Shown one piece after another: positions 17,034-18,785 of a stretch of DNA of 64,000 nucleotides (positions are counted from its first letter, which is position 1; every line of letters begins with the position of its first letter). Location of the stretch: the NCBI GenBank assembly GCA_002104945.1, contig MCFH01000006.1, positions 496,001 through 560,000 on the forward strand, given 5' to 3'. The notes under the pieces are model-generated. The model made no database searches and was not told where the DNA came from. It saw only the letters and a program-made list of their open reading frames with translations. This DNA is from Piromyces finnis finn (Eukaryota > Fungi > Neocallimastigomycota). The translations under genes were made by a program, and so were the position numbers.

Positions 17034-18785
17034 ATGTTACCCATATTAAAAGAGGTCCATACTTTTACTTGGGTTTATGGTATTATATCATAAGAATATA
17101 ATATATTTTCAATATACCATCTTAAATAAATGAATGATACATTTTTATTAATAAAAAAAATAAAACTATATATATTTGTTAATAATTGTTACAATTATAA
17201 ATTAAAAAACTGAAATTAAAATAATTGACGATTGAATTATGACGAAATTATATTTTATATTATTATTTGTTGTTGATGATTTAATAATGGTATTTAATGA
17301 AATTTATTAAAAAGGACAACCTGAGAATGTGATAATTACAGGGAATTTTGATAATTGGGAAAAGAAAATTTATATGGATAAAGATCCATTAACAAATATA
17401 TTTATTTCAAGAATCCTACTTCCAATTGGACAAAAAATTATATATAAATTTGTAGTTGATGGAATTTGGCAAAATGATCCAATGCTTCCTGAAGAAATTG
17501 ATATGCAAGGGAATAAAAATAATGTTCTTGTTATAAAACCCAGTATAGACAATCAATGTATTGATGACTCTAAAATAAAATTTAAAAAAGAAATGAATAA
17601 TAATAAACTAAATATGATACCCAATAATACCAAAAAATCAAATGCAAAATTAAAATTTAATCAAGAAGCTAAACATACCCACTACGAATTTATTGAAAAT
17701 AAAATTGAAAATACTATAAATAATAAAATATATAAAGGTAAAATTATCTATATTTTATTATTAAAATAAAAAGTTTTTATATTAAATTTTTAATTAATTT
17801 ATTTAAAAAATATTTATATTATTGGCTCTGTATCATCATTTTTGTTAAAATAATAAATCAAAAATAAATATTATAAATATATTTAAATATGATAATATAA
17901 TAATTATTTAGTATTATTAATGGGTGATACTGGTGTAGGAAAAACATGTATATTATCACGTTATGCATATAATGAATTTTCTATTAAATCTAAATCAAAA
18001 TATGGTATTGATTTTGGTACAAAAGTTGTACAATTAAATAATAATAAAACAACTGTAAACACACATATATGGGATACCTCAAGATATTCAAAGTAAATAA
18101 ATTCAAAAATCAATAAAATTTATAGTATATATATAAATGAAATGATGACTTGTTTTTTTTTTTAACTTATTATTCATTATATTTAAAGACATATACCACT
18201 CTTTTTTTTAGAAGGATCAATATGTGTGATAGTAGTTTATGATATTACAAATAAAGATAGTTTTGATAATTCGAAAATTTGGATTCAAGATATAAAAAAT
18301 AAATTTGAACGTTTACATAATAAAGAAAATATAATGTCTATCATGCTAATAGGAAATAAAGTTGATCAAGAGAACGAAAGAGAAGTCAGTTATGAAAATG
18401 CTAAAAAGTTTGCTGGTAACCAATTATTATATTATTGTTTTAAATATTATTAATTAGGCATCATTTATCTATCTATTTATATATATTGTATATATTATTA
18501 ATATTATTAATAACATTAATATTTCATAATACTTCATATCTATTTTATTATAATTATTATATATATATATATTCTAAAAAAAAGATGATGAAAAAATAAT
18601 GTTTGAAGAAATATCAGCTTTAGGTGCTATTAATGTTGAAAATGCATTTCGTAATGCATTAGAAGGTATTTAATACTTTATAAAAAATTTAAATTTAAAA
18701 TTAAATTTTAGCTAAATACTTGTTTAACTAAATTATAAAAATTTATATAGATTTACATCAAAAGGTTTCAAAAAAAAAAAAATAA
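17034..18785 (+). CDS. CBM48/AMPK-beta-type glycogen-binding domain fused to a Rab-like small GTPase domain, about 330 aa; exons 17034-17079, 17315-17737, 17912-18092, 18189-18415, 18585-18665, 18751-18785
   Basis: All five GT-AG introns keep frame (993 nt total). CBM: HTFTWVYG/QPENVIITGNFDNW..YKFVVDGIWQNDP. GTPase: YK/VLLMGDTGVGKT, YGIDFGTK, IWDT, VVYDITNKDSF, GNKVD, EISAL..NVENAF. Confidence 0.85.

Follow-up and report, generated by a model that had tools for sequence, protein, structure and literature searches.

A CBM48 module and a Rab11/Ypt31-like G domain encoded by a single gene in Piromyces finnis and other Neocallimastigomycota

Two properties define Rab GTPases: their C-terminal prenyl groups attach them reversibly to membranes, and they switch between GTP- and GDP-bound states. 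Here we describe a gene that combines a Rab-like G domain with an N-terminal carbohydrate-binding module (CBM) of family 48 (CBM48). The gene lies in a 64,000-nucleotide stretch of the Piromyces finnis genome (contig MCFH01000006.1, positions 496,001 to 560,000 of the forward strand), which we call the window and whose numbering is used throughout. Several described systems share part of this layout. The large Rabs CRACR2A/EFCAB4B, Rab44 and Rab45 likewise carry a Rab domain at the C-terminus of a longer protein, and their clusters are among the nearest shapes in the ESM Atlas, but their N-terminal parts consist of EF-hands and coiled coils rather than a CBM, and they retain the switch residues and the prenylation site. 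IFT27, RabL2/3, RGK and Rnd resemble the fusion protein in keeping the G-domain fold while having lost the lipid anchor and/or the catalytic or switch residues, and an IFT27 cluster is found among the feature-based Atlas neighbours, though with a score of only 0.69; by what is generally known of these families, however, they are related to the fusion protein only at the level of the Ras superfamily, and none has a carbohydrate-binding module. Stbd1, Atg45 (CBM20) and plant PTST/FLO6 (CBM48) are non-enzymatic adaptors tethered to alpha-glucan particles. They work on the same principle: a module that binds starch or glycogen recruits to the granule a second module, which is non-catalytic and serves for interaction. 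In place of a G domain, however, they use coiled coils, an LC3-interacting region (LIR) motif or a membrane anchor for interaction, and homology is confined to the CBM. To our knowledge, none of the large Rabs, the non-prenylated Rab-like proteins or the CBM-tethered adaptors joins a CBM to a G domain.

The families that correspond to the two halves of the protein are the Rab11/Ypt31/32/RabA group and the AMPK beta subunits. With Rab11, Ypt31/32 and RabA, the G domain shares the P-loop, the NKxD and SAL motifs, the segments NEF..SKS..G.DF and VVYDIT, and a helix alpha5 ending in ..YQKVS; relative to these Rabs, the fusion protein adds an N-terminal CBM48 and a linker, is without a prenylatable Cys and has altered switches. 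The fused CBM has the same profile as the AMPK beta CBM, the same predicted beta-sandwich and the same Trp, Lys, Trp and Asn positions, but differs in the replacement of Leu by Gln and of Thr by Asn in the loop before NN, and its partner is a GTPase rather than a kinase scaffold. Our literature search found no description of a CBM48-Rab fusion. An earlier note on this DNA, made from the sequence alone, had suspected as much; the architecture is indeed undescribed in the papers found, yet the sequences are already public, since fusion entries of P. finnis, Neocallimastix lanati, N. 'constans' and Pecoramyces stand in the databases under automatic names.

The P. finnis locus is one gene, spanning 17034-18785 on the plus strand. 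As that note had read it, six exons keep the frame open from the ATG at 17034 to the TAA at 18783-18785. The spliced coding sequence (CDS) is 993 nt long and encodes a protein of 330 amino acids (aa), predicted to be cytosolic. All five introns are GT..AG, and the gene sits in DNA of 16-18% G+C. We regard it as nearly certain that this one gene encodes a CBM48, a linker and a Rab11/Ypt31-like G domain. Its parts are as follows:

17034..17079 (+), exon 1: holds the ATG and encodes the first strand of the CBM48, MLPILKEVHTFTWVY, followed by base 1 of the Gly16 codon
17080..17314 (+), intron 1: GT..AG, phase 1; matching intron in the N. lanati contig-to-genome map
17315..17737 (+), exon 2: remaining CBM48 (to about residue 91), N/K-rich linker, and IYK of GTPase strand beta1
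17738..17911 (+), intron 2: GT..AG, phase 1; separates the exon of the CBM and linker from the first exon of the GTPase
17912..18092 (+), exon 3: rest of beta1, P-loop GDTGVGKT, switch I SKSKYGIDF, and WDTSRYS replacing WDTAGQE
18093..18188 (+), intron 3: GT..AG, phase 2; in the N. lanati map
18189..18415 (+), exon 4: remainder of the shortened switch II, VVYDIT, 6-aa insertion before G4, and G4 GNKVD
18416..18584 (+), intron 4: GT..AG, phase 1; in the N. lanati map
18585..18665 (+), exon 5: G5 EISAL and helix alpha5
18666..18750 (+), intron 5: GT..AG, phase 1; holds the alternative acceptor AG 18710-18711 of the public model
18751..18785 (+), exon 6: encodes the basic tail at the C-terminus, DLHQKVSKKKK, followed by TAA; no Cys

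Exon 1 is kept in every full-length orthologue, and in-frame stops are present just 5′ of the ATG at 17034, both in the window and in orthologue transcript contigs. When the exon pieces are scanned separately with Pfam, AMPK1_CBM is found in exon 2 with 57 bits (cut-off 26.8), exon 3 matches Ras with 45.8 bits and Roc with 50.2 bits, exon 4 matches Ras with 57 bits, and the Ras match of exon 5 is weak (E 0.076).

The junction between the two domains is formed by intron 2. The open reading frames (ORFs) from which the fusion had been proposed, at 17329-17769 (CBM-like) and 18226-18453 (Rab-like), are both present in the ORF list, and the proposed phase-1 join across 17738/17911 is borne out by the GT/AG boundaries and by eight orthologue clusters that share the junction. 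Specifically, intron 2 opens with the donor GT at 17738 and has 17911 as the last base of its acceptor AG, exon 2 stops after base 1 of codon 157, and the spliced join of exons 2 and 3 reads NNKIYK-V-LLMGDTGVGKT. In the predicted structure of the orthologue P0002, beta1 of the G domain comprises residues 153-160. Exon 2 had also been said to supply this strand, which is true in part: beta1 straddles the junction, and exon 2 gives only its first three to four residues (I/L-Y/F-K and a third of the Val codon), while exon 3 gives the remainder. Because exon 2 encodes the start of beta1, a GTPase begun at the first Met of exon 3 would be without half of this strand.

The same junction recurs in other species. 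An exhaustive HMMER search with the exon-2 peptide retrieved two close representatives: P0001, a genomic read-through ORF, and P0002, a protein of 331 aa with the same layout as the P. finnis protein. A further search with P0002 returned eight clusters that carry both PF16561 and PF00071 with the same junction, the named sources being P. finnis, N. lanati, N. 'constans' and Pecoramyces ruminantium; none of the database matches of this search is the exact transcript ORF of P. finnis. P0001 enters its exon at the point matching the end of intron 1 and reads ...NNNLFK before running into intron sequence, so that the position of intron 2 is matched in a second genus, as it is in N. lanati.

Transcript-type contigs span both domains without interruption. 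P0002 is encoded by an unbroken 996-nt ORF on 14 Logan contigs of 1.35-1.7 kb, of which the ten shown come from ten different runs; their 5′ leaders reach ~490 nt in length, and a stop codon lies in frame four codons before the ATG. The N. lanati protein is likewise encoded by an unbroken ORF on contigs from JGI. One of these, L013, aligns to the N. lanati genome in six blocks at 100% identity, with five introns at the corresponding places, which shows directly, for N. lanati, that splicing joins the CBM exon to the GTPase exon. Furthermore, a metagenome scan added four more intron-free contigs of the family, and intron-free contigs of three other species, L017 and L018 included, are colinear with positions 1-991 of the spliced window CDS. 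The fusion is expressed as a single mRNA in related species, in agreement with the proposal of one gene rather than two. For P. finnis itself, 31-mers sampled from 17034-18785 recur in three runs of one organism, classed 'RNA?' by a guess, at shares of 0.47, 0.46 and 0.36, against a share of 0.472 expected with only the six exons present. The gene is therefore probably transcribed and spliced in P. finnis.

The CBM/GTPase junction is already present in the public P. finnis protein P0157, a 290-aa entry automatically named 'ras-domain-containing protein'. Over the 4 kb that were compared, the window and the P0157 locus (GCA_002104945.1, MCFH01000006.1) agree in every letter, and the sequence of P0157 is the same as that of the 330-aa model except at both ends. 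P0157 (window 17374-18731) begins at Met36 and so lacks the first two strands of the CBM48, which lowers its Pfam CBM score to 30.9 bits; at the 3′ end, it uses the acceptor AG 18710-18711, which leads to the tail AKYLFN and a stop at 18729-18731. Orthologue transcript contigs favour the ATG at 17034 and the exon start at 18751 over these ends. In particular, full-length orthologues all begin MLP..KEVHTFTWVYGQPENV and finish ..EDL[YFH]QKV....; the Pecoramyces model P0155 is shorter at the C-terminus and ends ..VLE. Because the orthologue ends match and intron-free contigs cover CDS positions 1-991, comparison of the sequences indicates that the first and last exons of the 330-aa model are better than the ends of the public model. 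The practical outcome is a P. finnis gene model that is corrected at both ends.

The N-terminal domain is an AMPK-type CBM48. PF16561 (AMPK1_CBM) matches residues 10-93 of P0002 with 60 bits (cut-off 26.8), the exon-2 CBM matches the structure of the AMPK beta-2 CBM with E 1.3e-8, and rat and human AMPK beta-1 and beta-2 CBM structures are matched with E 1e-8 to 1e-6. AlphaFold predicts a beta-sandwich of seven strands over residues 6-88 of P0002, with a predicted local distance difference test (pLDDT) score of ~67-87. In the alignment with the AMPK beta-2 CBM, the motifs GNFDNW and DGIW keep the W, YKF the K and GNKNN the NN. Of the sugar-contact positions, which we take to be W100, K126, W133, L146 and N150 of rat beta-1 (CBM-cyclodextrin structure), four of the five putative ones are as in the AMPK beta CBM, and all five are invariant within the family.

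We considered whether the protein is itself an AMPK beta subunit. AMPKBI, the C-terminal domain that binds the alpha and gamma subunits, gave no Pfam match in P0002 or P0157 at E 0.001, the fusion protein has no Gly2 that could be myristoylated, and its C-terminal half is a G domain; because AMPKBI and Gly2 are lacking, this identity was rejected. Another P. finnis contig encodes a protein of 279 aa (P0224) whose N-terminal AMPK1_CBM shares 46% identity with the fused CBM and in which Pfam finds no AMPKBI; the fused CBM may derive from P0224, or P0224 may be a divergent beta subunit of AMPK. The next CBM relatives outside the family (P0003-P0017) contain 3 to 13 tandem copies of AMPK-type CBM48, and many are ~480 aa long with four copies.

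The C-terminal half is a Rab-like G domain. PF00071 (Ras) matches residues 155-321 of P0002 with 130.7 bits over profile positions 1-161/162, and P0157 with 132 bits. The top matches in the PDB are all Rabs, namely Plasmodium falciparum Rab11 (131.6 bits), Ypt31 (121), Ypt32 (119) and Rab8A (118), and the sequence matches to Rab11, Ypt31/32, RabA1a and Rab8 range from 131.6 to 117 bits. The closest solved folds are RabA1a, Rab8 and Rab11, with template-modelling (TM) scores by target of 0.86-0.88. In the AlphaFold model of P0002 (mean pLDDT 72.6), the G domain (residues 153-330) is confident except for switch I.

The nucleotide-binding motifs are intact, with G1 reading GDTGVGKT, G4 GNKVD and G5 EISAL, and none of the 14 family members departs from GKT, NK.D or EISAL. 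The switch elements are changed. The switch I Thr (G2) is replaced, Rab11 reading SKSTIGVEF and the P. finnis protein SKSKYGIDF, with Lys at this position and Arg in one orthologue. In G3, WDTAGQERY of Rab11 corresponds to WDTSRYSKH (DTAGQ to DTSRY), so that both the Gly and the catalytic Gln are replaced, and switch II is two residues shorter than that of Rab11, as seen from a 2-aa gap in the alignment. Across the family, the G2 and G3 replacements are invariant or alternate between Lys and Arg. Relative to Rab11, six residues are inserted before G4. Cys occurs only at residues 97, 169 and 229 of the P. finnis protein, whose tail reads ...HQKVSKKKK; a C-terminal Cys for geranylgeranylation is present in none of the full-length orthologues, and their tails are basic.

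The RabF motifs that distinguish Rabs are IGVDF, KLQIWDTAGQE, RFRSIT, YYRGA and LVYDIT. YGIDF and VVYDIT of the fusion protein fit these motifs, and NTHIWDTSRYS, KHIPLF and FLEGS fit in part. Because the switch residues and the prenylation motif are absent, the protein is best called Rab-like rather than a full Rab, and its sequence and fold matches place it in the neighbourhood of Rab11 and Rab8. Descent from Rab11 is a lead, the margin over Rab8 being small. With the nucleotide pocket intact and the catalytic and switch residues lost, the G domain is, by sequence, a candidate nucleotide-binding pseudoGTPase.

The domains are separated by an N/K-rich linker of ~60 aa, which is poorly conserved and is predicted with pLDDT <50 over residues 93-150 of P0002. 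Two pieces of it, MIPN and the helix Y.FIE..IEN.INN directly before beta1, are invariant in 14 of 14 family members and may form a docking element:

17614-17625, residues 116-119: MIPN, invariant in 14 family members
17683-17727, residues 139-153: predicted helix YEFIENKIEN.INN, adjoining GTPase strand beta1

To assess selection, we computed pairwise Nei-Gojobori ratios of nonsynonymous to synonymous substitution (dN/dS) from the P. finnis, P0002 and N. lanati coding sequences, whose synonymous divergence is 0.4-1.1. The ratio is 0.03-0.07 for the CBM, 0.12-0.19 for the G domain and 0.36-0.63 for the linker, and CBM residues 36-87 are almost invariant in the 14 family members. Both domains are under strong purifying selection and the linker is not. 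Because of the low dN/dS, the invariant elements and the kept synteny with the neighbouring CLC and COG2 genes, the comparison argues for a functional gene family and not a decaying fusion.

Outside this family, the combination of AMPK1_CBM and Ras was sought by several routes. In the CBM-exon search, P0001 and P0002 are the sole family members among the top 150 CBM relatives, none of which outside the family was found to combine CBM and Ras; ten non-family matches were scanned with Pfam, and a G domain is absent in all ten, nine of which have a single N-terminal CBM. Whether queried with the whole protein, its CBM part or its GTPase part, word-indexed searches returned only the family, ordinary Rabs at no more than 41% identity, and one P. 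finnis protein with a CBM only. The sequence searches found no stand-alone relative of either half, the ESM Atlas contained no CBM+Ras cluster when searched by features and by shape, and the metagenome scan found no CBM+Ras beyond the four extra family contigs. Within the limited reach of the sequence, Atlas and metagenome searches, the fusion was found only in Neocallimastigomycota.

We propose that the protein is a glycogen-bound adaptor. Glycogen-bound glucose has been measured in N. lanati biomass (PMC8561657). The CBM48 would bind glycogen or a similar alpha-glucan through the kept aromatic, Lys and Asn residues, and would take over the targeting role of the prenyl anchor that is missing in every family member. 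The G domain, with its P-loop, NKxD and SAL motifs intact, would probably still bind guanine nucleotide. Because Lys or Arg stands where switch I normally has Thr, DTSRY replaces DTAGQ, and switch II is shortened by two residues, the G domain is probably unable to run the canonical GTP-hydrolysis and loaded-spring cycle. The most likely mode would therefore be a constitutive, nucleotide-bound Rab-type surface displayed on glycogen particles. Such an adaptor would couple the granules to partners of the Rab-effector type, such as motors, tethers or autophagy and turnover factors, possibly for the positioning or partitioning of glycogen, and myosin V and other Rab11-type effectors would be a lead for the docking partner. 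Taken as a whole, this functional chain is put forward with slightly less than even confidence.

Of the functions suggested earlier for this protein, tethering to glycogen and a link between carbon storage and trafficking would fit the kept sugar-contact residues together with the missing lipid anchor. Sensing of guanine-nucleotide status in the canonical sense is less likely, because the switch I Thr and the switch II Gly and Gln are all replaced. A more specific version of the adaptor proposal, which we think unlikely, is that the protein is a Rab-type identity tag on the membrane-less glycogen granule, with the anchor swapped for a CBM and the G domain locked in one state; granules would then be handled by the Rab-effector machinery like organelles, for example during the loading of glycogen into zoospores.

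Several points weigh against the glycogen-adaptor proposal or the model beneath it. Rab11 effectors bind the switch and interswitch surface, the very part that is altered here; because this surface is changed, the partners need not be Rab11 effectors. Basic residues are conserved where Rabs have Thr and Gly/Gln, and these might allow catalysis or switching of a non-canonical kind instead of none. One of the AMPK sugar-contact positions, the Leu before Gly, is Gln in the fusion protein. The predicted model of P0002, with a predicted template-modelling (pTM) score of 0.55, is not reliable for inter-domain contacts. Use of the 17737/17912 junction in P. finnis rests on the public gene model, the k-mer share and the orthologues, and the 31-mer share in the 'RNA?' runs fits one transcript or two alike.

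The altered motifs of the G domain could also be read as those of a working switch of a non-canonical kind, in which the Lys/Arg and the Arg of DTSRY contact the phosphates and the nucleotide state tunes the enzymes that build or degrade glycogen at the granule. The intact and invariant G1, G4 and G5, the replacements in G2 and G3, which are invariant or conservative (K/R, SRY) rather than random decay, and the low dN/dS of the G domain all speak for such a switch. Against it, the two elements of the universal loaded-spring switch, equivalent to Thr35 and Gly60, are missing together with the catalytic Gln, switch II is two residues shorter, and no GAP or GEF (GTPase-activating protein or guanine-nucleotide exchange factor) partner is known. 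Moreover, RGK proteins and Rnd, which have comparable changes, hydrolyse GTP poorly or not at all. We judge a non-canonical switch to be improbable.

Targeting to glycogen, the first step of the adaptor proposal, has a rival of its own, namely that the CBM48 has a regulatory role through protein-protein or intramolecular contacts, like the AMPK beta CBM docked on the kinase lobe, and that the protein acts elsewhere in the cell. AMPK-type CBMs make protein contacts too, the Leu-to-Gln change affects a sugar-contact position, and the constraint on the CBM, near-invariant over residues 36-87, goes beyond the need of sugar binding alone. Both Trp, the Lys and the Asn are nevertheless kept and invariant, the 60-aa linker, predicted to be disordered, would fit a tether better than a docked domain, and the protein has no other targeting signal, with neither Gly2 nor a C-terminal Cys. 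A CBM used for protein contacts in place of glycogen therefore seems unlikely to us.

It is far less probable that the fusion is a lineage-specific accident without a function of its own, that is, a neutral domain shuffle or a decaying Rab11 paralogue. The loss of the canonical catalytic and switch residues and of the lipid anchor, and the finding of the family in one phylum only, would be expected of such an accident, but strong purifying selection acts on both domains over synonymous divergences of 0.4-0.9, the family is kept in at least three named genera, CLC/COG2 synteny is shared by Piromyces and Neocallimastix, and transcript-type contigs occur in many runs.

The reading of the locus as two separate genes, one for a CBM protein and one for a small GTPase, with the fusion as a modelling artefact, has in its favour the separate ORFs of a prokaryote-style ORF list and a 31-mer share compatible with one or two transcripts, but is close to refuted by the unbroken ORFs across both domains on many independent transcript-type contigs from several species, the six-block map of L013 with its intron at the same place, the half-missing beta1 of a GTPase begun in exon 3, and the failure of the sequence searches to find a stand-alone relative of either half.

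The family has given up the prenyl anchor and the canonical switch and has gained a CBM48, and strong selection on it has persisted throughout a fungal phylum. If the proposed targeting to glycogen is true, a fold that in Rabs labels membranes here marks a polysaccharide particle instead. This would amount to a new way for cells to position, partition or turn over their glycogen granules, and to a clean natural case of a small GTPase with a swapped targeting device.

The fusion gene is flanked in the window by the following genes:

10402-12114 (-): hexokinase, upstream neighbour
19288-24007 (-): CLC chloride channel with CBS domains, downstream neighbour
25208 onward (-): COG2, downstream neighbour

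These neighbours (hexokinase, CLC and COG2) offer no clue to the function of the fusion protein. The hexokinase gene is not retained as a neighbour in N. lanati; the CLC-COG2 order beside the fusion gene is common to Piromyces and Neocallimastix (N. lanati).

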